19,415 nt of DNA, taken from NCBI GenBank assembly GCA_023515725.1, contig JALDTO010000318.1, positions 1-19,415 on the forward strand. The letters run 5' to 3'. A program made the position numbers and the translations under genes. This DNA comes from Amoeboaphelidium protococcarum X5. Lineage: Eukaryota; Fungi; Aphelidiomycota. The first letter of the stretch is position 1. Each line of letters begins with the position of its first letter. Under the pieces are notes generated by a model that was not told the origin of the DNA, did not search any database, and saw only the letters and a list, made by a program, of their open reading frames with translations. Below are positions 1,071 through 19,011 of the stretch, piece by piece.

Positions 1071-4018
1071 ATGGCCAGCAAGCAGATTGTGAATAAAGCT
1101 CCGTAAGAAGCCGGTTTGTACTTGGTTCCCTTGGTTTACACTGGACAAGGAGACGTTTTGGTTCCCACGGATCAGGTATCTTGTCAAGTTAATGGTAGGA
1201 ATCATTTTTTCATATCTCCTATATCACATCTTCTATTGCTGTTTATGCCTCTTTCGTTTATGAATGTGTAGTGATTAATCTCCTCTGCCATAATCGAGTA
1301 ACGTAAACTTTCAAGGTGAGTGCGATTTAGAATGCAGCAGACGTTGTTGGGGATGTTGAAGCAATCTATCGTTTGCCACTAGTCGATAGAGCTCTCATCA
1401 ACGGGCTGGAGATTAACATTGATGGAAGGAATATCACAACTTCCATCTCTGATGCTGATACCGGTAACAATCAAGAGGATATGATTGCCTAGATGGATAA
1501 GCCAAAGCGTGAATTGTTGCAGATCAATATGGGACAGTTGAAGGCCAACTCTATCGTTACCGTATCCATCTCTATGCTATATGAGCTAAAGAATTATAGT
1601 CAGCAGTGCGTCAATTACGTTATACCTACCCATCTGATTGGTAAGGACTGGAAGGAGGACCATAAGGTTTCTTTCAAGGCCAGTATTCATTTCTAGATGC
1701 TGTCTCAGATTAAGAATATTGTTTCCTCCGTACCAGATGCGCAAATTGAACTCAATTGTGGTAGAGATGCTAATAAGCGCGTAGTGAAGGAGGAAGATAA
1801 GGCTAGACATGCACAAGTGAACGTCGATTTGAAGTTGTCTAAAGAAGACTTGTCATCTGAGCACACTCTGTCCATTTATACTGCAAAGTGGGGCTAGTCT
1901 ATGGCTATTACTGAGTTCAATCCCAAGACTAAAACTTACTGCACTATGCTGGATCTGTGCCCATAATTCAAACAGGGAGAAGGTGAGATGAAGTGTGACT
2001 TTGTTATTTGTTTTGATATGACTTCTCAGATGGTTGGAGGTAAAGCGTATAGAATGAAATAAGCTATTTAAGTGCTGTTGAAGTCGCTACCTGAAGACTG
2101 TTTCTTCAACCTAATTGGATTCGGTGCTGGCTGTGCTGCCATGTAACCTTATAAGAGCTTAATAAATGGCCCTGATGCTCAGGAAATGGCCACTGCTTTC
2201 TTGGATGGAATACAGCCAGACATGGGTGCTAAGCGTGATTTAGAAGTGTTTAAGAATGCTTTTACTGAAATCAAGCTGCAGCCTAATTATCGCCGTCAAA
2301 TTTTTGTGATTACTGGTGGAGAGTTTGAGAAGGCTGATGAAGTGCTCAAGTATGTTCGTAGCTAGGCTAATGGTGGTAGAGGAAGATTGTTTTGTGTTGG
2401 CGTTGGTAAAGCGTCAAATCCGGCGTTCTTGGAGAAGTTGGGCTCTTATGGAAGTGGCGAAGCATACTTTGTCAATTCTCAGGATAGATTGGAGCTGAAG
2501 ATGTTGGCCATGTTGAAGAAGGCTATGTAGCACGGTGCTCGTAATTTCAGAGTGCGCTGGGTTGACAACAAGGTGTTTTAATCTGCGGCGCCATCCACTC
2601 CTGAGAGCGCCAGTGTGAAGAGTAAAGATGGATCCGCGAAGACTTTCGGTATGAAGGACTTGTTTACTGTGGATGAAGCTGATGTGGCTAAATAAGAGTC
2701 TTATAAGTTTGACGAACATGTTTTATGTCAGACCCCAGCCGATATTCATTCCCTGTACGTTGGTAAGAGAACCTCAGTGTTTGCATTCACCAAGTTACCT
2801 GCGCAGCTGCTGAAAGAGCTATTCCTGTCTGCTGCCTCCACGGAAGGCCCACAGGATTTCACGGCTGAGGTTGTGAACTCTGTCATGATTGTCGGTGAGA
2901 ATGATGTGCCAATCATTCATACTATGGCTGCAAAGCGCTTGATCAATGATTTGGAAGACAATCGCTCCTACTTTCATATTGGTCTTCCTTTTCATCCGAC
3001 ACTGGAGGCTAAGAAGAGATCTCCATCTCATGTTGATGCAAAAGATATCTCTGCGACCATTGTCAAGTTAGGCAAGGAGTACAATTTGATGACTTCAAAG
3101 ACTTCGCTGATTGCCACTAATGAGTTTGGAGAGTAGTTGAAGAAGACAGATCTGAGTATTAATTGGATCATTCCAAGTCATCGCACGGCTAATGCTAAGG
3201 CTTTAAGTCCACGTGGTCAGACTCCGAGTCCGTCACCAATAAAGTCTCAACTGAGCGACAAAAAGGATTCAAGTTCCGGTGATGTTAAAGGATTAGGATC
3301 TCGCAGCAGTCGCACCAGTTTGTTCTCGTTCAAGCGCAAAGATTTGAGTAAGACTCCAGCCAATGCTCCTGCACCTAGTGTTGACTCGGGTAAAGGATCA
3401 TCTTTAGCTCCGGGTGGTGGTCAGTCGTTTGTAGAGACGCATATTTCGTAGGGATCAGATGGTGGAGCTAAGATGTCTTAACTTTCCAGTGATCATTACG
3501 GCAATACTTCCGCTTCCATGTCTAGAATCTCGGCTGATGGAGAAGGAACAGCTACGGAGGCTTCCAACTTTTAGGAACCGCCAGCGAATGACAAGTATTC
3601 AATTATTGTGTCTCTGCTACGTTTTCAACAAGCTGATGGCTCTTTTGTGTGGAAGAATGAACTGGTTGATCAATTGTCTCTACTGCCTTAAGCACCCGGT
3701 CAACAACAATAGTCGGACTAAAATCAGGCCTCTCTAGCTGAGGATGATAAGAGCACGATATATCGCAACGACATTTCCGGAAAGGTGAATAGCGGTAAGT
3801 CTTAGGTAATTCTGGATCCTAATGCAGAAGAATAGCAAGCAGTGTGGGCCACGCTTCTGGTGCTAGCTTATTTTGAAATCCATCTACCGGGTGAACGTGA
3901 CATTATTGCATAGAGTGAAAAGAAGGCCAGCAAGTGGTTGGATTAGCCTCAGTAACTTGGCTATTTGAGCGTTTCCAAAGATTAGGCTGTCGATGCTGCA
4001 AGATCCGTCTACGCCTGA
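1071..4018 (+). CDS. VIT + vWA domain protein (VWA5A/PARP4/ITIH-like family), about 956 aa; exons 1071-1194 and 1272-4018
   Basis: ATG at 1071. VIT-like RVTQTF...VEAIYRLPL...INGLEINIDGR. vWA-like DFVICFDMTSQM...LLKSLPEDCFFNLIGFG, RQIFVITGGE and RLFCVGVG. VWA5A-type C-terminal motifs IHTMAAKRLI, FQQADGSF and VWATLLVLAYF...KKASKWL. One frame joins the track ORFs at 1493, 1697, 2777 and 3137 through TAA/TAG. TGA at 4016-4018. Confidence 0.9.
1195..1271 (+). other. Spliceosomal intron (77 nt, phase 1) in the VIT-vWA gene
   Basis: GTAGGA...pyrimidine-rich...TGTAG. Removing it joins QVSCQVN-V-INLLCHNRVTQ in frame with the long downstream ORF. Confidence 0.8.
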
Positions 4019-4502
4019 AGTTCGCATGGTCGTAAGTGCGTTAATTACGATACAGTTGGTATTTATGATGATATGAGGTGAATAAAGGTTGAATAATAAA
4101 GTAGGTTGTGGTGTACGGTATGTTGATTTTACTTACAATAATTGATAGTTGCCGCGTTTACAATTAATTGAATCCAGTCTTTGATGTTGTGGAGTAACAA
4201 CACTACATCACCGGATCTGTACTTGATTCTCAAAAATTATATCTAGCGTAATGTTTGTATTGTTCATGTTTTTATCACGGCCAGGCTCGACTATTTAACG
4301 TTCACACAGCTTTGTTTGATTTCAATATAATAATACGCCTTGGCAACGGATCTTGCTCGATCAGCTCAGCTTTGAGACTCAATGGTATTGGTAATGTTTG
4401 TTTTGGCCTGTGCTTGCTTGCCCAGTCTGTTGTCTACTCTTTTTCTCATCCGACTCTGCACATTAAGACTTTAGCTATACTTGCATTTTTGACTTACTTA
4501 TA

Positions 4503-7058
4503 ATGACAGTGTTTAGCAAGGCTTTAACCTGTGCATTGCTGTTTACCGTTTCCCAGTTTACTCATGCTGCGGTGCCTGTCATTGGTGGCGGGTCAACTTT
4601 TCAGACTGATATTTAGGTCATCTTTAATGATTATTATGCTTTCTCTTTGAATTCCACGGGTGTGGTGAGTTACAATTCTACTGGAAGTTCAGCGGGACTT
4701 AGTTAGACTATTGCTGGATTGTACATGTTTGGTGGTTCTGATTTCCGTCCTCCAGTTGGTTCAGCTGTGCAGGCTATCCCTATCTACGCCGGTGGTGTGT
4801 CTGTGGTTTACAACGTCCCTGAGTTGTAATCTGCAAACATAAACTTGAGGCTATCTCGCAGTGCTCTGGTTGGTATATTTAGTGGTCAGGTTAAAAAATG
4901 GAATGATCCCCTGATTGTGGCTGCCAATCCTTTGGCGACCTCTATACTGCCTGATTAGAACATTACCATCGTTCGTCGTTCCGATGGTAGTGGTACGACT
5001 TTTGCCTTCTCATCAGGTCTATCATCAGTTGATAGTACAACCTGGGTATATGGTGGAAACACAGTGTTCAACTGGACTTGGGCAAAGAATATTGCTGCTG
5101 CTGGTAGTTCTGGTGTGGCTAAGAATGTTCTCGGATTGAGGTACAGTATTGGATATGTCGATTCTTACATTGCCACCGATTATCAGATCTAGTCGGCCTT
5201 CATATAGAACAAGAAGCTGGAATACATTGAGCCGTCCTCTCAGTCTATCAATGCTGGCTTTCAGCGTATCCAAGGCGCTAATTTCGATACTCAAGACTTT
5301 ATTGATGTGGATGAGACTGGTGCATACCCGTTCGTCGTGTTTACGTACAATCTGCTGAATGATAATATGAAGCAATTCTTCTCCATCACTCAAGTGCGTG
5401 AGACGTTGAAGTATCTGTATTGGTGTTTGACTGATAATTTTGCCACCAACTCGCTGCTTGCCAATACTCTGATTCCTGTTTAATAGAATATTAGAGATGT
5501 CAACTTGAATTTGCTCAAGACTTACAAGTATGGTGATGTTCAAGTTTTCGGTTAATCTCCGTGTGACGCTCCCAACTAGTGCAAGAATGGTGGTTAGTGC
5601 AGTGTTATCTACCCGTTTACTGATCCTGTGGTGAAGTGCAAGTGTAATGCTCTGTTCACTAATGTCGTTAATAGCGATTGTTCTGAGCTATCACCAGGAG
5701 AATTTGTCGATCTCCCTTAATTGCCTGCAGTCTTGATGACCATATTCGCTTTGGCTGGCATCTTGTACACCATAGTCATGGGTCTCATGCTGGTGACCAG
5801 AGCTGATCATCCGGTGGTGAAAGCTATGAGCCCGTTCTTTTGCTTCTGGATTCTTGCTGGCTGTATCTTAAGTTATGTCTCTGTGTTCCTGTTCATCGGA
5901 GAGCCTAACAATTTTACGTGTGGTGCACGTCCTTGGTTCCTCTCTACAGCTTTCGGTGCCGTGTTTGGTATGCTTGCTGCAAAGACATGGCGTATCTACT
6001 CAATTTTTGGTAATGTTAAGCGTATGGAGGAGAGTCTTACTAACTTGAATCTATTCATTCGCTTCGGAGGTGTCGTGCTGAGTAGTGAATGGCTATTGGC
6101 CATCATATGGTCCGGTGCGGGTATCCTGTAGCCTTACAATACATTCTCTGAGAACGGACTTAGCGTGGCTAGAACTTGTGCGTCTTTGAATGGAGATTTG
6201 TAGACGGCCATGTCTGTCTTATTCTACCTCTCTAATGCAGCCTTGTTGGCTTTCTGTATTTATCTTGCTTACAAGACGCGTAATTATCAGTATCAGTACA
6301 ATGAGAATCGTGAAATCTCTTTGACCCTGTCTCTGATCACGTTCCAACTGGTGATTGGTATCCCTTTGACGTATGTTATCGCCTTGGATCATGAAGCTGT
6401 TTTTGTTATCACAGCTGTGACTCTCACTCTGGTGCCGTTCACTGTGACTACAGTCATGTTTGGACCAAAGTTTTACAGCCTTTACTTGGCCAAATTCTTC
6501 AAGAAGGAGGGCGCTTATGATATTGGAAAGTCCACGTTTGGTGCTAGTGCTACGAATGCCTCCACTGCAACTGGAGGTGCCGCATTGAGAAAGAGTACTG
6601 AAATTCTACCATCTGGACTGTCTTTCTGGCATTGCAGTCTGAAGCGTAATCGTATCGGTTCTCCGTGGTTTATGTGCACCATTGCCATTGTACCGGAGAT
6701 CAACTGGATTGCATTTGTCGACGATTGGGCCAATTCCTCCCCTAAAGTGTATGAAGTCTTCAAGTTTACCGATGTGAGTTTCTCTGATCAAGTGCCGAAA
6801 GGTCAGGACCCGGAGACAAGTACACTGCTGAAAGTGGGCGCTGTTGAATACATCATGGAGGTGAAGACTAAAGAGTACATGGCCAAGTTCAACAAGGTGC
6901 TATCAAAAGTGCAACACGGCGCCGAAGCCAATGTCAAGATTAAGAATACTGCCACAGGTGAGAGTGTCAAGCAGCCAGCAACTATTGATCGATCGGCCAA
7001 GATTGATAGAACTGCAAATGAGAAAAAGATGACCATTGTTGAGTCGGATAAACTATGA
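4503..7058 (+). CDS. Receptor A: signal peptide + PstS-type phosphate-binding domain + EGF-like domain + class C (7tm_3) GPCR + cytoplasmic domain, 851 aa, intronless
   Basis: Signal-like MTVFSKALTCALLFTVSQFTHA. PstS motifs GGGSTF, YNSTGSSAG, FGGSD, VVYNVP, IFSGQVKKWNDP, RRSDGSGTT, SIGYVD and AYPF. Six-Cys EGF at 5562-5681. 7TM motifs HPVVKAMSP, CGARPW, AKTWRIYSIF, YNENREI and FGPK. One frame with no TGA until 7056-7058. Confidence 0.93.
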
Positions 7059-7320
7059 TGATGTATCTGGTCGCACTATGATACTTAAAGGATGATGATT
7101 ATTGATTAAAGGTTTATAATAAAGTTTAAAGTTGATAATGATAGCTGTCTTTTTTTACAATGTACTGTATAAATAAAGGCAAAACTTCAACGTATGGAAA
7201 TTCTATTGCATCAAATTCTAAACTTTATCAACCTTTATTACCACTTTCATCAAGTAAACCAAATTCTTTCACCTCAGTCATTATTAATTTCATCATAGCG
7301 AGTTGATACATTCATGTTGT

Positions 7321-9003
7321 TCAATCAGCCAAAATAGACTTTATCTCGGCAGACTGCATAAATCTAGGGAAGCTGGCCTTTTGCATCAGCTGGAAAATAT
7401 GATCATACGCATCACGCAGAACATTAATGTCAAGAGAGTTTGGATTTGATTCTGCTGCCTTAATGTCAGCCAGGATTGTATCACGCGTACCTGCTAGCAA
7501 ATTCAACTCATTAGGACTTCCAATGGCGACAAAATTGTAACAAATCTCTTTACACTTGATGAAATACTCCGTGCGATCCATAATAGACTCCAGCTCTTGA
7601 CAGGCCAAGTAGAACTTCAAGTTCTCAGTTGAGTAATCCTTCTCCAAGAAGGTCATGAACCACTTCAATCCAAGAGGATCCTGTAGAACATCACGCAACC
7701 CCAAATTCCACATACGCGCATGACTAAATGAAGGAGTATCTGGCACAGGTACCTCGACATACTTCTCCGTCTCAGACTTATCCCACGGGTTGTTCTTGTG
7801 CAAGTCAGAGCGAACCAGCGGATCAAATCTTGTATACATGTCAATACGCGTAATAAGATTCTTGACCGCCGTGGAGGTTGGCAGACGATAGATGTTCAGA
7901 CAGGCAGTCAGATTATCCACCTACTTCTTAAGATAAGCCTCCACTTTGGCTTCATCTTTCAACTTCTTCTCGTACTTCTCCGGGCTATAGCGGTGCTTCT
8001 TGATCTTGGTAATTGGCGTCTCCTCAATGTAAAGGCGACTGGCTTTCAACGGTCTCTGCACCTTCCAGAAGGCAGCCTCACGCAACTCAAACAACTTCTT
8101 CTCACCACGGTCCAGCCTGCTAAAATGAGCCTTCTGCTTGTCCTTCATCTCTCTGATCAGGTCCTATTTGAACTCAACAGCCTGTCCCAGGGTGGCAAGG
8201 CGCTCCTTCTCCTCAGAGTTCAAGTTGGACTTACGCTTCAAGTACAGGTAGTAATCCAGATCGGAGGTTTCCCAGAAACGGCTAGGATAAAAGAAGTCAG
8301 CCTAGTACGTGTACAAGGAGTCGTCTTCACGATACACCTGCTGATTATCATCGACCGAAATTATGTAGCCGTTGTCAGTCATGTTTTAGATGATCAACTT
8401 GGCATCGGCCGGGTTCAGAGCATTTAACTCCTTCAAGAACCACACGGCAATATCATAACCAGTAGCGCACAGTGGCTGAACATTAAGCAATCCTTTGATG
8501 TCCTTAAAGTGGACTCCATCCACGGGATCGCGCAATTTACGCAGCAACTTCTCGTAACGCTCAAAGCGGGCCTTGACAGCGAAAGATTACCAGCGAGGCG
8601 CCACAGACAGCAGCTTAGATTAAAGCAATGCCAGCTTATAGTCCTTCTCCTCGACATAGATCTCCTTCTTACCAGACACGGTAGTGTTAATAGATGTGCC
8701 CGCATTTTTGCTATTCAACGATTCACTCGATATGCTGACCCTACTTCCCTTGGTGCCAGAGAAAGCCTTACTGATGATCGAGGTCTGCTTGTTATTCTTG
8801 GATACGACGGACATGTTGTCATCACCAACGGTGCTATCTCTTGTGGTTGATGTCATGATATCTCCACCAAGAGATGGTTATGGCGATATACCAGAGCTGG
8901 CAGCAGATGCAGTCTTTTTGCGGTAGTAAGATTGCTCCTATTGTTTCATGGCCAGCTTCTTCAGTGCAGCCTTGGTCTCTTACAAATCTTCGGTATCACT
9001 CAT
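7321..9003 (-). CDS. R7-family-like regulator of G-protein signalling (DEP-DHEX-GGL-RGS; RGS6/7/9/11/EGL-10-like), 560 aa, intronless
   Basis: ATG at 9003, with an in-frame TGA upstream. DEP: LRDPVDGV...ATGYDIAVWF...NGYII...DDSLYTYQADFFYPS. DHEX: DYYLYL...EAAFWKVQRP. GGL: LNIYRLPTSTAVKNLI...FDPLV...NNPW. RGS: LRDVLQDPLG...FLEKDYSTENLKFY...ELNL...HIFQLMQKASFPRF. TGA at 7323-7321. Confidence 0.9.
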
Positions 9004-9614
9004 GTTAGTATTGATTGTATTGCTAGTGGTGCTTTAAAAGACAAATACTTCCAAATTGGTCAATCAGTATAAGTCAATATAGTTACAGATATACACCAAT
9101 TGTAAATGAAGAGGAAACGTTGCCTACTTCAGTCAGTGAGTAAAAGTTTCATGATGAGCTAATAAACAATTGCAGTTTTACTGTTTGGTATAAAAATAAA
9201 CTCTGATGGAAACCTCACCAAGTTCCCACAGTTTATGCCCGTAACTATGTAGGATAAACTCGGTTCTTAGATGCAATATCAAGTGTTGATATTTGGAAGC
9301 ATTAATGCGTGCGGTACATTAAATTCCATCCAGTGTGTTTTATGTGTTACCGTATAACACGATTCCGTACCATACTATTTAAACTCGGTATGTATATTTT
9401 GGTAGATGTGGCAGTTGATTACGCAAAAGTCAGCTGTCAACAGTCAAACTGATGCTAATACACTATGAAATATGACGTATCTATCATTTATACAGCACCA
9501 AGATACCTTTCACAAAATGGAAATATGTTTGATATCATCATAATTTATAACCACTTTATATCATCTTTTATTTTAATCTTCCACATCGTCTTAATTAATG
9601 TAACCTTAAGAGAA

Positions 9615-12160
9615 TCAATTGTCATCCACAACGCTGGAACTGATCGATGACGATGCCTTGGTAGCAACGGCCTTGTTCAACTCCAACGCAGTCTGCTGAA
9701 TACGAGGGAAGAACTTCTTGAATCTAGCCATCATATCCTTGTTCTTACTCTCCAATGAATACTCACCGGTTGGGTGTTTAATCACACAACTCTCAGGAGT
9801 ATCACCGTCAGCCAATTAACACTCGGTCAATTTCAAAGACTCGTACACTTTCAACTGGGAGCTGGTCATATCTTCAACCGCGGCGAACCAGTTCAACTCT
9901 GGAATCACAAATATCACAGCTTACAACCAGGCAGCACCTAAACGCTTCTTACGGATGGAGAACTGCCAGAAACTCAAACCAGACTGACTGACATCACCAA
10001 AATTCTTATTACCTGAATTCTCAGCCGTAGCCGTACGAGCAAAGATGGAGTTGGACATATCATAGGCCAAACTCTTTCTAAAGAAGCGGGCAAAATACAA
10101 CTCATAAACCTTGGAGCCAAACATGATCGTCGTGATGAAGAGCGGGCACAAGATAAGCAGCAAGCACGTAAGAATATTAATGGAATTGTAATCCAGCGAT
10201 GGCAAGTACACCAGGGGCAGTCCAACAAGCAGAGGCAGAATGGTGGTATAGATGGCGAATGAGATCGACTTGGACTCATTGAACTTTTCACCAGCATATC
10301 TAGTCTAAAATGCGACATAAATACATGCACAAAGCAAGATTGCATTAAATACGTACAACAGAGCACTCATAGTAGACGCAACGGTAGCATTGCCAGAGAC
10401 ACAAGTCTTCACGACAAAATTAGACGCATTCAGCACTACCGTGGGCTTCAAAGGTGATGCTGCCACCCAGATGATGCTCAACAACAACTCCAGACCACAA
10501 ATGACTGATCCAAAACGCAACAATAGACTTACATCAGATAATGATTAATTCACACGACGCAGATTACCAAAAATGGTGTACACACGATAATTCTTCGCAG
10601 TCATCATACCAAACACCAGACCAAATGCAATGGACAACCAAAATGGACGCGCATTACACATAAAATCATTCGGCTCACCCAAGAATAAGAACACTCCTGT
10701 ATAACTAATGGTACAACCACCCAGAATCAGTAAACTAAAGGTTGGTGAGATGGCCTTGATCAATGGATGATTTCTACGGAACACCAACATCATAGCAACC
10801 ACACCATTGTATATAATACCGGATATGGCAAGAAACAATAGGAAACCATTAATCGGCTCTTGGTAAGTAATAAACAGGGACGGCGTTAATTCGCTACAAT
10901 CGTTTTTGAGATTATTGGTGTACAACTTGGGACAGCTACATCTTATAGTAGCCGGAATGAAAGGGCTCGTCTTTACCGGACACACACCATCATTCTGGCA
11001 CAAGCCATCAAAATCACAGACAGAGGTACCATACAATGGTTTAGAGTCACTGTACACAAACGACTGTAGTGTTGAGATAGCATTCTACAAGTTGGCATTA
11101 TCCAGCTGCACGTAAGAGAATCTAGAGATAACACGCTAAGCATACGTATCAGTGTACGTCCAGTAAATGTAACGCATGACAGATCTAAACTGATCAACGT
11201 TATAGTATCTAGACACATTCTTATTCAGAGCATAGAACGTGAACGTGGTAATAGGATACGAGCCACTCGCGGTAGAATCAACATTACCAAGCGTCTCAAA
11301 GTCACCCTGTGCAGCGGCAAGAGCAATCTGAGCAGAAGTCTAGTTGGCCACAGTGAGCTCATTCTGTCTGTTATACAGACGAGCGTAATCAATCTACTTT
11401 GTCGCAGCATCAGCCAAATCAAGATATCCAACAGAGTAAGCATTACCAATGATGTTCTAAACCACACCGATGGAACCGGCACCACGAGCAAAAGGTGTCA
11501 AACCAGCATTGCCCCAATTAGGAAGACCATTCACGCCAACTTTACTGCTCCACTCCGGAGACACCTTGGTCAGAAACTGTGTGAATGCAGTAGTAGTTCC
11601 AGAACTGTCATTTCGCACAATGACTTTGATATCCTGGTTGACGCTAGAAAGACTAGGATTGTTTGCCACTAAAGCGGGATCGTTCCATCTAGTGATAGTG
11701 CCATTGAATATCTTCACAACAGTCATGCGGTCCATGATAAGGGAACAACTTTGAGAAGAACATCCAATATCAGGCACATTATAAGTGATAACAATCGCAG
11801 AGCCAAAGGTGGGCAGAGTGACAAAAGAGTTGGCAAACTCAGGTGCGATAACAGATGGCAAAGCATCAGTACTACCCCAAGCAGCACCACCATTCGCAGC
11901 TGTTCTCACACCAGACCCGGAACCAACTGCAGAATACTGAATAGAAGTATTGGCATAACTGAAGGGTAAACTGTTGTATGACAGAGCCCAATCAAACTAA
12001 ACTTGAGCCTGCAACGTAGACCCAGCGCCTTAAAGATCTACACAATACGCATTTATTAGAGATTATTCGAAACAGCTATTTTATCAATGCTCTATCAAAA
12101 CTTACTCGCTTATATAAGAGTTGCATACAATGCGGCAAAAGCAAATTTAGTTAGTATCAT
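9615..12160 (-). CDS. Receptor B: paralog of receptor A (signal peptide + PstS + EGF-like + class C 7TM + cytoplasmic domain), about 825 aa; exons 12160-12106 and 12037-9615
   Basis: MILTKFAFAALYATLIQA-NLQGAGSTL. PstS motifs YSAVGSGSG, WGSTD, ITYNVP, IFNGTITRWNDP, VRNDSSGTT, SVGYLD and SYPI. EGF at 11018-10896. 7TM motifs HPLIKAISP, CNARPF, AKNYRVYTIF, FNESKSI and FGSK. The track ORFs starting at 11909, 11057, 10523, 10211 and 9815 share one frame. TGA at 9617-9615. Confidence 0.92.
12038..12105 (-). other. Spliceosomal intron (68 nt, phase 1) between the signal-peptide exon and the PstS domain of receptor B
   Basis: Minus strand reads GTAAGT...CTAAT (branch-point-like)...TGTAG. It contains an in-frame TGA, and splicing restores the frame into LQGAGSTL. 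Confidence 0.88.
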
Positions 12161-13108: not shown

Positions 13109-14398
13109 ATGCCATCACCCGCAAAGCCTTGGGAATCTGCAGCGATTTCCAATCAAATAGATAGCTAGTAGTAAAGCTAATCCACAATGGTCGATTCTAC
13201 TGCTGCTAACACTTCTGCTCCTCCATTGCCTGTGCAAGATTATCAGGATAGTGGCACTTATGGTGCTCAGTCTTCCATTTACAATAATAATAACAATCTA
13301 ATGTCCAGGTATGGAGGCAATAATTATCGATATGGATTAAATGGTGGCTACAATAGCAACATCTCGTCATATGGAGCAGCAGCGTATTCTTCTCCTTATT
13401 CATCACCGTACAATTCTGCGTATTCCTCGTCGTATGGCTACAATAGCTCTCCTTATGGCTCATATGGCTATGGGAATAGATATGGCGGTGGAATTTCATA
13501 CGGTATGGGAGGCTACAATCAGTAGTAGTAGAATATGTTGTAATCTCAATAGGGTGGTCCCTCGAATCCGCTCATGGTTCTGGAGCACGCGGTGTAAATA
13601 TTGTCCTCTGTGACGCACCTGTTAGATTCCACCATAATGGCCACTCATAGCTCTTTCATGGGAGTTATTGGATTGATTGAACAGGTCGGTGTGCTCAAGT
13701 CTATTGTCGGAGGTGTAGTTGGCTTGAAGTGGTTATCTACATTCATGGGATTGTCTTCTAGAGATTATTAGTCACATGGTTAATCCACGATGAGGTCTGC
13801 ATTAAGTGTTGATGAGTTTAATAATAATAATAATGGTGCTGGTGGTTTAAATTCATCATAGTAGATGCAATAAAGAAACAGTAGAAGGCGGAGTAGATTT
13901 TTTAGATCTAAATCCTTCATGATTATGGTTGCATTGGCTGTCATTTTCGTAATACCATGGCTAATGAAAAGAGTATAGAGGCGGAGATAGTTGTAATAGA
14001 CTTAGTAGTAGGAGTAGTTGTCACTTGAGAAGTCATAAACCACTGAAAGTTCTAATAAGGTTAATAATACACTGGATATAACGTATCCTGATGGTGTTAA
14101 ATAGAATACGGATGGTTCGTAGATTGAGTTTGCTAGAGCACTTTATGACTTCACGGCGCGTAATTAGAATGAGATTTCATTTAAAAAGGGAGATCTGATA
14201 GCTGTTACTTTCAAAGGTGGTGATAATAGTCAAAGTAATTTATTGCAATAGAATACTGATCCCTCTTGGTGGAGAGGCAAGAAACGCCAAGGACATATTG
14301 GCTACTTTCCATCTAATTATGTGTCTCTTATTGGAAAGTAGGTGGACATATCTGCCGATTAGTTTATCACTTAGTCGAAAGGTTAATAAGTGTAATGA
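13109..14398 (+). CDS. PEX13: Peroxin-13 (peroxisomal import docking/pore protein), 429 aa, intronless
   Basis: N-terminal MPSPAKPWE, a Tyr/Gly/Ser-rich YG region, the Pex13 core LLDSTIMATHSSFMGVIG and a TM segment FMIMVALAVIFVIPWLM. C-terminal SH3 EFARALYDF...EISFKKGD...WWRG...IGYFPSNYV. TGA at 14396-14398. Confidence 0.93.
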
Positions 14399-14564: not shown

Positions 14565-17468
14565 TCAAATCAGAGGTGGAGGTAAATCTACAGAAGAACT
14601 TAAGATCTTCTCCACCTGACTCTGATCATTTTCATTGTCATCAATAGTGGCGACCAATGTGGTGGATATAAATGGCAGATTCTACTGCTGTGCATTGGGC
14701 AATCCTATGAAGTCCGACGGTGGAGCAGGCCGTATTGACATTCTAAGAGCAGCAGAACTTGCAGATGATGATGATGAAGATGGTGGTGTAGTCGCCCCAT
14801 TAGATAAAGACTCTTTTGATCTCCCGGGTCGACTTACTCGGTCATTCACGTTGAAATTAGTCTCTGTTTACTATGACGCTTATTATTCAACATTTGTCGC
14901 CTGAGTCGATGATGACAACTGCGGCGATTACGGACCATGACCATCCATCATCAGCAGTCTCGACCTTCTCTTTTACTCATCGTGCTTCTCTAAAATGCGC
15001 TTCTTCAGCATCTCATCCAGGACTCCATTACCGGGCATTTCGCGTCTCAATGGAGGGTAATCAGGCACGGGAGGAGCAGGACGTCTAGAGGTGGGAGTAT
15101 GTACGCCATTAGACGTGGAAATCATACTAAATCTATTATTTTGATTTTGATTAATAACTTAAGAGTGACGGCGCGATACAGATTAAACGTCTACGGTTAA
15201 GGTGGGAGATTGCAGTGAAGTACTACCTTGTGCAATAGGCGAGGATGGAGGAGTCTTATCACCACTTCTAAGGCTTAGTCGTTTATCATTTAGACTATTG
15301 TTGATATCATTATTGTTATTACTACCAACGCTATACCGCAGACTCTCTTTCAATCGATTCAACTCAGACTCCAACTTCTGGACCATGGCACTCAATTTCT
15401 CATTCTACTTTACCAGTTTACTATTCTCATCCATAAGCTTCGAATTCTTCTTCTGCAACTATTCACATTCGTCAGTATATGAAGACTCTTGCAATGTAGA
15501 CTAACGTTACTGGGATGTACGCAAACTATTAATGTCCAATACCAATTCGATATCAGAGCATATAACTTCCAGAAAATTAGATGGCACTAGACCATGCATC
15601 TCAATCTATGCCTATCGACTGCTACCACCAATCTGCTCACACGTCCACCATCCCTCTTTATGGAAATCAAAACTGGAATCAGCACGCGCATAGATAATAA
15701 AAAACTAATTAACATCAAATGACAACTCTTAGAGACCTTGGGCATCCACCACATCACTTGCTGATTAATACGCATATATAGACTTGGCGATACCAACAAC
15801 TTTGTACTGAGTGCTACCAATTTAGCTCTAACTTGCCCACCATAATCCAGAGTCCCCAGACTAAAAAAACTTGGAGCACAGATCAGATACAGACATGAAC
15901 AGCATATCCACATGCTTAATCATATCCAGAACAACGGCATTGATATAAGCTGCATTCATCACCATCTACTAGGCACTAGTCTCTTCGGCCAATTCACATC
16001 TGAGAATATTAGGAGCCAGCACAGTGGCCATATTCTATAGAGACATTTTGTTATGAGCGCTATTACTCTCTGCCGATACTAAACTACTAAACTGTAACAA
16101 TGTGCATAGCAAGTCTCTATTCTCGGACGGCAAACTGTTGACCAGGACATACATCTACCATAGACGTTATGCGCCACTTTTAATTTGATCCGTAGACTAT
16201 TGAGACTGAGCACATGCAATAAACGCATCAAATAGATCAAATGTCAACAGAGGATCAGGCAATTCACGAAGAAATAACTTGACCACACCAGCAACAGCAT
16301 GTCCATCACCCAGATTTATATAATCCAAAAGAGCATCTTCACCACCGACCAGAAACTTCATTCCACCATCAGGATCATTATCGAAAAGGTTCTTCAACTT
16401 TAACACGGTGGATTACGCGCCACTTAATCTGAAAATTCCTTCAGTCTACAATTCATACTTTTTCAAATGCCTCAGCAATACTTTAATGATGACAGGGATC
16501 TGAGTACCGGGAACTTTTGGCACAGCATAAAGTGGAATGTCAAATGTGCTATTGATCGAACTCTGAGGTGACGAATATTTACCATGTGCAGATTTACCAC
16601 TACCTTTACTATGGCCATGGCTGACAATCTTGGTCAACTTCTTCATGGTACTGGAGGACATTTTCTTGGTCTCTTAAAAAAATTGGCCAACTGTTATAGA
16701 TGCAGATGATGTGGTGGAATAGTTACCGGCTTAAAGCTCGGATTAAATCTACTGATTATTAATATCTTTAGATACAGAGTGAAGAGATGGAGACGACTTG
16801 TGAGAGGACAATAACGTAATATCTGACGCACAATCACTCAGCTGTTACTTATAAGCACCTGATGATGATGATGTTTACTACTACTAAACTGTGAGCAGTG
16901 ATGGCGATTAGTCATTCTAAGCCATTGCAGATGATGTCTGATGGGAAATCTTACCATCCGCTGCAGAGTTAACATCACCACTGTGCATGCTGAGAGTGGT
17001 AAACTGCTTCTATAAATTCTACTAATCTGCACGCCTCAATTTCCTCAGAGTCTTGGACTTTTCACCGGCAGCTTTCACCAATGCCTAATTACTATTGCTG
17101 GTAATATAATTATTAGCATTATTACTCTTCTTATTAGAAACTTCTTATTTCAACAATGAATGGTCAAATTTGACCAACTAGATCGCGTCATTGTCCAGCC
17201 ACGAGAATTGCGGGTATTAGTTCAGAGATAGGTTATGATCGAGCATCAATCCACTGCCTCCATCATCAGTGCTGTTATTATGAGATTCAGTAGTAGATGC
17301 AGAAGGCTTGTAAAGAGTACAATCTCGCATAAATTCCGCGTCTAGATTACACTTCTTCTGCACCAGATGCATCACCGTCTTTAGAGGATCATCCCGCCCC
17401 ACACGAATACACTTCATCACACCCAGCTCTGGGATCTCCACACGCAAAATAACACTATCCTGAGTCAT
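14565..17468 (-). CDS. Rho GTPase-activating protein with N-terminal FERM-F0/SPN-like ubiquitin fold, RhoGAP, SH3, coiled coil and Pro-rich tail, 967 aa, intronless
   Basis: One frame from ATG 17468 to TGA 14567-14565. RhoGAP: IPVII...EGIFRLSG (Arg finger), VAGVVKLFLRELPDPLL, LPSENR and NKMSLQNMATVLAPNIL. SH3: AKSIYAY...ELSF...EGWW...GLVPSNFL at about 15800-15560. Heptad-like EQLQKKNSKLMDENSKL...LESELNRLK, and RRPAPPVP. Confidence 0.9.
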
Positions 17469-17898: not shown

Positions 17899-19011
17899 TC
17901 AAACATTATATTATTACTATTATTAGTAGTTGTTGGCAGCATTCTAGTTGTTATGGTACATGTTCAGAAAATAGTCCAATTCGTACATGAGAATGTCTTT
18001 AGCATAGTGTATGGTGACCGGCGTGGTGGGATAGAAGTTGACTGTGCGATCCCACTCCCTCCACATTTCAATGTCGCGCGGCAGGTGAGGAGTGAACGCG
18101 TCATTGTGACTCAGCGTAACGTTAAAATGCTCTTTCACACACCAACTGAGAACCACATCTTCACCCAGCGATTCCTCAATCACCTGGCCATTATTGAGTC
18201 GCCGGCAGCGGTTAACATTGGGTGCAAACTGAGATAAGAATTTACTGCTCAACACATAGCCAGCACCGCCCGACAGGATATAATTATCTCCCGTAAACGC
18301 AGTCTTTATCCTTCGCCCAATTACATAAGGCTTAGATTGCGGATCTTTATACTAGCTCAACATTCGGACCAGACTGGGAATCAGTACGCTGGTATCATCA
18401 TCAATCTTTAAGAACCATTTATACTTTATTCTAGGCAAGCGCATTTTATCGATCGAATTATCTGAATCTAAAGACACCTGATGTTTGTACAAATACTTCC
18501 ACATTGTCAGTGTCTTCTCTGTGATGTGATGTGAATTTTACTCCCATGTAGGTAGCTGGATGAACATATGTCTAGGTGGAGCGGTGAGATTACGATTGAG
18601 GAATGGGTGTACGTTACTACCATACTTGTTGTATCTAGAGTTACCGGCACCACTACTCCCGCTATCACCCAGATCTTTACCGAGATTAAAAATGTCTTCG
18701 TAATCCATAGACAAGCCCGTCCTTCCAATAAAGAATCTGATAGTCACCTGCGACCGCTCCGGTGCTCCCCAAGTATTAAATATAGCAAGACATCGCTGAA
18801 TAGTCTATGGAGAAGTCATCACAGCTATGAATATATCTCTTCCATTTTCGCGGATTTCTCTGTCCAACACTGCTTGATAATACATATTCAGCTGAAATGA
18901 TGTAGCAAGTAGGATAATCACAACAACCAGTACAATCACTGGCGATACCCAACTCCTCTTTACCATTTTCAATTTCCTGAATCTAGCGTTTAATTAAAAA
19001 TCATAAGCCAT
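17899..19011 (-). CDS. GT31 (Fringe/C1GALT1-like) beta-1,3-glycosyltransferase, type II membrane protein, about 370 aa (alternative start 18966)
   Basis: Basic N-tail and TM anchor VIVLVVVIILLA. Motifs IFIAVMTSPQ...NTWG, KWFLKIDDDT (DxD), VIGRR, LSGGAGYVLS, EDVVLSWC and VTIHY. TGA at 17901-17899. Confidence 0.88.

Follow-up and report, generated by a model that had tools for sequence, protein, structure and literature searches.

Locus Organization and Gene Models

The window, a stretch of 19,415 nucleotides of Amoeboaphelidium protococcarum DNA, carries two paralogous genes, here called A and B, that are predicted to encode G protein-coupled receptors of class C with a PstS-type ectodomain. 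Receptor A is one intact open reading frame that is open only if TAA and TAG are read as Gln, and 16 such codons lie inside it. TAR and CAR codons interchange between the two genomic copies of A at residues 18, 38, 257, 327, 347, and 804, positions that are otherwise unchanged, which shows the reassignment to Gln. Database searches used the pieces of A and B between TAR codons as queries, and the read-through proteins and the spliced model of B served for local translation, dN/dS, alignments, and trees only. Receptor B, on the minus strand at 12160-9615, is built like A, with PstS, EGF-like, seven-transmembrane (7TM), and PH-like parts; 304 of 807 aligned positions are identical between the two, and 32% in the ectodomain. 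The features of the window are as follows.

4503-7058, plus: receptor A coding sequence, single exon, 851 aa with TAA/TAG as Gln (open reading frame, second copy, RNA-like contigs over 4474-7135)
4503-4568, plus: probable signal peptide of A, residues 1-22 (judged by eye from a basic start, a hydrophobic core, and a small residue ahead of PstS)
4569-5549, plus: complete PstS (type II periplasmic binding) domain of A, residues 23-349 (profile alignment, Pfam, TIGR00975)
4596, 4599, 4686, 4740, and 4977, plus: codons of A site residues T32, F33, S62, D80, and R159 (PstS alignment)
4983, 4989, 4992, and 4995, plus: codons of the remaining A site residues D161, S163, G164, and T165 (PstS alignment)
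5562-5681, plus: six-cysteine EGF-like linker of A, C354-C393 (Cys spacing; kept in B and fungal homologues)
5721-6488, plus: class C seven-helix domain of A (Pfam 7tm_3, alignments to GABA-B2 and mGluRs, helices in a homologue model)
6615-6914, plus: cytoplasmic PH-like domain of A, residues about 705-804 (low-confidence model, Foldseek, fungal tail profile)
12106-12160, minus: B exon 1, signal-peptide-like, 18 aa (predicted gene model)
12038-12105, minus: predicted GT-AG intron of B, 68 nt (66-nt counterpart with the same ends in the second copy)
9615-12037, minus: B exon 2 (open reading frame, Pfam, PDB matches, PstS profile, dN/dS 0.026)
about 12037-11031 and 11018-10896, minus: PstS and EGF-like parts of B, within exon 2
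about 10856-10086 and about 9989-9705, minus: 7TM and PH-like parts of B, within exon 2
7321-9003, minus: R7-type RGS gene, DEP-DHEX-GGL-RGS, between A and B and transcribed separately (domain matches)
about 1330-4018, plus: vWA-domain protein, an ordinary neighbor, start approximate
about 13109-14398, plus: Pex13 with SH3, an ordinary neighbor, start approximate
about 14565-17468, minus: RhoGAP protein, an ordinary neighbor, start approximate
about 17899-19011, minus: Fringe-like glycosyltransferase, an ordinary neighbor, start approximate

The whole block has a collinear second copy (G000:C264:1454000-1472000) that is 90-92% identical, and dS between copies is about 0.22 in the receptor genes; judged from sequence, this doubling is that of a hybrid or duplicated genome. 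The second copy of A is 94.6% identical, with 19 amino acid differences, four of them within the signal peptide. The dN/dS values between copies (A 0.044, B 0.026; within the PstS domain 0.05 and 0.04) indicate purifying selection, and no phosphate-site residue differs between the copies of A or of B. Across the 23.6-Mb assembly, the matches to PBP_like_2 (at least four) are both copies of A and B, and those to 7tm_3 (at least four) are the same four genes, which makes A and B the only class C genes found among the matches listed.

Sequencing run X4 yields one gap-free contig of 1862 nt (4476-6337) that covers the start of A and runs on into the latter half of its 7TM domain, with no joints found. 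Runs X4 and X5 are RNA-like: they leave 4200-4470 and 9125-9520 uncovered, and a poly(A) end follows B at 9528; their run type is unrecorded and they are available as contigs, so they speak to continuity rather than to level or strand. A single contig across the PstS-7TM junction in a run without intergenic cover argues for one transcription unit. The first-pass annotation had raised the prospect of separate PstS and 7TM transcripts, and here both parts lie on one RNA-like contig. The intact copies, the purifying selection, and the spanning contig together exclude separate genes or a pseudogene.

The R7-type RGS gene is one of three such loci per genome copy, the other two being in tandem on C137/C181, and the genome has at least nine strong G-alpha matches. 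At five homologue loci in fungi, one of which stops at a contig end, no RGS gene was found within 10 kb, and no conserved linkage of receptor and RGS was seen.

A PstS Ectodomain with the Phosphate Site

A profile of 321 positions, built from 78 PstS homologues of bacterial length and numbered after E. coli PstS (NC_000913.3), aligns with A at positions 4-313 (E 1e-61) and with B at positions 2-314 (E 1e-70). Pfam assigns PBP_like_2 and 7tm_3 to the pieces between TAR codons, the best PDB matches of the ectodomain pieces are PstS structures, and the best NCBIfam match is the PstS equivalog TIGR00975. The window pieces, too short to reach the equivalog cut-off of 205 bits, score 114 bits on 179 aa against TIGR00975, and whole homologue domains score 200-213. 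The proposal that the ectodomain of A is a complete PstS is thus borne out by profile, structure, and family matches alike; the motifs quoted for it are all present, and the interval then given, 4569-5550, corresponds to residues 23-350. The fold itself was taken from a homologue, P0050, rather than from A or B: a model of its residues 42-690 (pLDDT 94.5, pTM 0.77, seven helices) superposes on PstS with a TM score of 0.92 by target and an rmsd of about 2 Å, which supplies, for a homologue, the superposition that had been proposed as a check.

At the binding site, E. coli T10, F11, S38, D56, and R135 correspond to T32, F33, S62, D80, and R159 of A and to T26, L27, S58, D76, and R160 of B. The remaining residues, D137, S139, G140, and T141, correspond to D161, S163, G164, and T165 of A and to D162, S164, G165, and T166 of B. 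The same set is therefore aligned in B, as had been claimed, apart from the Phe11 to Leu replacement. In PstS, Asp137 pairs with Arg135. Seven residues are listed as phosphate contacts in PstS, Phe11 and Gly140 through their backbone only (PMC6549937), so that Leu in B would be neutral; the earlier list of ligands holds for the contacts, and Asp137 as a direct contact falls outside these seven. Outside the site, A and B are 26-27% identical to E. coli PstS. No PstC permease was found in the genome, which argues that the PstS domain of A and B serves no ABC importer.

Linker, Seven-Helix Domain, and Tail

An ESM Atlas cluster of homologues is named EGF-like, and no Pfam EGF match to the six-Cys linker was obtained. 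The 7TM domains score 143-151 bits against 7tm_3 (cut-off 33.5), and their best PDB matches are GABA-B2 and mGluRs. Class C motifs are kept, namely, the TM3 Lys, the TM3 and ECL2 Cys pair, NE before TM6, and F-x-P-K in TM7. The canonical ANF-type Venus flytrap and nine-Cys domain are absent from A and B, and the ANF flytrap has no match in the genome. For the tail of A, a single-sequence model gives seven strands and a helix (pLDDT 40 overall, 50-70 in the core), and the top 50 Foldseek hits are all PH-superfold proteins (best E 6.5e-5). A tail profile built only from other fungi matches A and B with E values of 3e-8 and 1e-11. The PH-like tail is conserved in fungal members and was not found in the tandem-PstS protist receptors examined.

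Distribution and Origin of the Family

The first-pass annotation had allowed that uncharacterized fusions may exist in databases, and the family indeed proves widespread in fungi and protists. A piece of B retrieved long proteins carrying both PstS and a class C 7TM domain. Receptors with one PstS domain and the linker of A and B were identified in Calcarisporiella, Jimgerdemannia, Endogone, and Paraphysoderma, and those of full length also have the PH-like tail; a divergent single-PstS receptor is found in the amoeba Arcella, and tandem-PstS receptors in Plasmodiophora and environmental sequences. In the ESM Atlas, four clusters of at least 50 members each carry the PstS and class C 7TM pair, one mostly Chytridiomycota and one mostly Discosea; chytrid members are known here only as this Atlas cluster and are absent from the returns of the word-based homologue search. 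In Paraphysoderma, PstS/7tm_3 genes form a tandem array at L014:871-13771, and the annotation splits some of them.

In both trees, A pairs with B, and the two share a clade with the single-PstS receptors of fungi, with support just below the starred level (SH-aLRT 93 in the PstS tree; 94/93 in the 7TM tree). This placement suggests that the fusion probably predates the split of the aphelid lineage from those fungi, and the A/B split is probably a duplication later than the fusion. A single origin of all eukaryotic PstS-7TM fusions is neither shown nor rejected (p-AU 0.088). In a quick, small-sample, unrooted tree, the 19 PstS domains from eukaryotes group together, opposite 19 sampled PstS sequences labeled bacterial from their length (SH-aLRT 99). 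A recent pstS capture or bacterial contamination is rejected on the strength of the placement on the eukaryotic side and of the fusion shared with distant fungi.

PstS domains were also seen in other eukaryotic settings: on a kinase and nucleotide cyclase (P0011, Fabomonas tropica), on WWE and PARP (P0020), on a sulfate-permease/STAS transporter (P0051), with a cysteine-rich and TRP-like multi-pass domain (P0001, Chromosphaera; P0003, Entosiphon), and with an ANF flytrap and multi-pass domain (P0010, Rigifila). The phosphate site is intact in domains 1 and 3 of P0001, in domain 1 of P0010, and in P0051. From these architectures, PstS looks like a general eukaryotic sensor module.

Possible Selection on the Phosphate Site

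The site is kept in A and in B at 8 of 8 positions. At 27% overall identity, this would occur by chance with a p of about 1e-5; other conserved PstS columns, however, are kept at 30/33 and 27/33, and at that rate 8 of 8 has a p of 0.2-0.5. Retention in two paralogs, which had been taken to imply selection for phosphate binding, is therefore unremarkable next to the scaffold. A different contrast comes from tandem proteins. In the 19 eukaryotic PstS domains that bear the site, which are first domains and one additional repeat, 145 of 152 site positions (95%) and 534 of 627 other conserved columns (85%) are retained, whereas in seven degenerate second or later domains the site falls to 18/56 (32%) and the scaffold to 133/231 (58%); the rows are related rather than phylogenetically independent, and the tallies describe a pattern and carry no test statistic. 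The site is lost faster than the scaffold in second domains and kept in first domains, which suggests that it decays where it is not needed. At the level of alignment, this contrast is a stronger argument for selection than retention in two paralogs.

Several members vary at the site, with D56E in P0050 and P0019 (Calcarisporiella) and S139G/G140P (paralogs P0159 and P0144) or G140S in Paraphysoderma. The standard-code homologues P0154 and P0202 carry the site in full. In P0012, P0013, P0069, P0094, and P0010, a membrane-proximal PstS without the site accompanies a distal PstS with it; the degenerate membrane-proximal domain may serve as a spacer or bind a different ligand.

Comparison with Known Systems

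Like E. coli PstS (1IXH; TIGR00975), A and B have the two-lobed fold and all seven contacts plus Asp137; unlike it, they are fused to a 7TM domain, carry N-glycosylation sequons, and lack a PstCAB transporter. With canonical class C receptors (mGluR, GABA-B, CaSR, T1R), they share a 7tm_3 domain with the Cys, Lys, NE, and PK motifs and a bilobed ectodomain, and differ in having a type II PstS rather than a type I ANF flytrap, a six-Cys EGF-like linker rather than a nine-Cys domain, and a PH-like tail. CaSR has its own link to phosphate, which antagonizes this calcium receptor non-competitively through an anion site, R62 (PMC6795806), whereas in A and B the whole ectodomain has the fold of a phosphate-binding protein. 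GPR158 (mGlyR) and GPR179 resemble A and B as class C 7TM proteins with a non-flytrap small-molecule sensor, an EGF-like linker, and an R7 RGS on hand; their ectodomain is a Cache rather than a PstS domain. The DING/HPBP proteins have a PstS-related fold and are reported from eukaryotic samples; they differ in being soluble and match the homologue model less well (TM 0.65 vs 0.92).

Closest in design are non-animal class C receptors with type II ectodomains. In two surveys, Spizellomyces SPPG_06488 appears with PBP_like_2 and 7tm_3 among unusual class C ectodomains (Krishnan 2012, PMC3251606), and gut-fungal class C receptors are described with type II, sugar-binding-like folds (Seppala 2016, PMC5168858); SPPG_06488 is likened here by its Pfam pair alone. 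The word "phosphate" is absent from the main texts of both. The main texts of other GPCR surveys (PMC3971589, PMC10445921, bioRxiv 2024.11.25.625238, and PMC12716839) give no phosphate reading, and PMC10445921 has PBP_like_2 among its domain abbreviations. In the searchable literature, which leaves most subscription journals outside its scope, nothing was found that pairs PstS or a phosphate-binding protein with a GPCR. The claim that no PstS-GPCR had been characterized thus stands within that literature, and its novelty was overstated, given the type II folds and the Pfam pair just cited. The architecture is already catalogued, and neither an identification of it as an intact PstS site nor an experimental test of it was found.

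Proposed Mechanism and Alternatives

On balance, the domain content and the site favor a reading of A and B as cell-surface class C GPCRs for the sensing of inorganic phosphate outside the cell. With about the same confidence, by analogy, phosphate would close the PstS lobes and the linker would relay this closure to the 7TM domain, probably in a dimer, with activation of a G protein. From PstS biochemistry, phosphate would be held between the two lobes, and sulfate would be rejected by the equivalent of Asp56. By analogy with mGluR, GABA-B, and GPR158, lobe closure would pass through the disulfide-bonded linker to the 7TM domain of a probable AA, BB, or AB dimer, the 7TM domain would act on one of the G-alpha proteins of the genome, and the PH-like tail may dock a lipid or a signaling partner. 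More speculatively, an affinity in the sub-micromolar range, as in PstS, would serve a free-swimming or crawling stage in fresh water that is poor in phosphate, where the receptor might report phosphate status or a nearby leaking host cell. The affinity also counts against sensing: E. coli PBP binds phosphate at 0.03-0.07 μM (PMC6549937), so that most media would saturate the site if it is unchanged.

That saturation lends itself to a different account, in which phosphate would be a permanent structural or allosteric cofactor, or would be used by one paralog only, and the stimulus would act elsewhere, at a 7TM pocket or through a protein partner. A site of very high affinity would stay filled, phosphate is a non-competitive modulator of CaSR (PMC6795806), and the degenerate PstS domains that persist in tandem receptors imply non-binding uses of the fold. 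We nevertheless regard this account as quite improbable: PstS is the sole extracellular sensing domain of A and B, and the site persists from the aphelid lineage to Mucoromycota, Plasmodiophora, and other protists. A little less doubtful, though still unlikely, is a pocket for a related anion or phosphorylated compound (a phosphoester, a pyro- or polyphosphate end, or phosphite), for example, as a host or prey cue. The low identity to E. coli PstS outside the site and the variants in other members leave room for such a ligand; all direct contacts, however, are those of PstS, the best family and structure matches are phosphate-specific, and sulfate and vanadate are not taken by E. coli PBP (PMC6549937).

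Phosphate may also be the ligand with a different output, in which the receptor, like GPR158/GPR179, would anchor the adjacent R7 RGS and tune its GAP activity. GPR158/179, likewise class C proteins, combine a sensor other than a flytrap with an EGF-like linker and partner with R7 RGS proteins, and the mGlyR GAP activity is inhibited by glycine (PMC11437087); the DEP-DHEX-GGL-RGS gene, at one of only three such loci per genome copy, sits between what are, among the matches listed, the only class C genes found. Against this, no RGS gene was found within 10 kb at the five fungal loci, the adjacency was spotted after the fact in a gene-dense genome, and the 7TM domain is not placed with GPR158-like proteins, its best PDB matches being GABA-B2 and mGluRs. 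We give this output as little credence as the alternative ligand. The 16 in-frame TAA/TAG codons could, finally, raise the suspicion of bacterial contamination, a broken gene, or two genes fused by stop read-through, an artifact that we consider extremely improbable in view of the TAR/CAR interchange, four intact copies, eukaryotic neighbors, a transcript-like contig that crosses the junction, and the presence of this fusion in fungi with the standard code.

Returning to A and B as phosphate-sensing GPCRs, we lean slightly toward a broader reading, in which they would be the first recognized dedicated GPCRs for extracellular phosphate. They would belong to an ancient family of aphelids, chytrids, the Blastocladiomycota side, and Mucoromycota, with tandem relatives in Plasmodiophora, amoebae, and other protists, and to a PstS toolkit that takes in GPCRs, kinase-cyclases, and transporters; some members would perhaps act with an R7 RGS.

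Implications

The detection of extracellular phosphate by eukaryotic cells is poorly resolved, and, to our knowledge, the known eukaryotic phosphate-sensing routes are intracellular (SPX/inositol pyrophosphate) or transporter-based. Their domain content makes A and B good candidates for a eukaryotic sensor dedicated to phosphate outside the cell, and the PstS ectodomain leads to a specific prediction of the ligand for an entire family of orphan GPCRs. If the prediction is true, a binding fold of type II is able to drive a 7TM domain of class C via an EGF-like linker, and the receptors would offer a ready-made genetically encoded phosphate sensor. The family spans root-associated Endogonales (Jimgerdemannia and Endogone), algal parasites, and Plasmodiophora, organisms in which phosphate bears on relations with the host.
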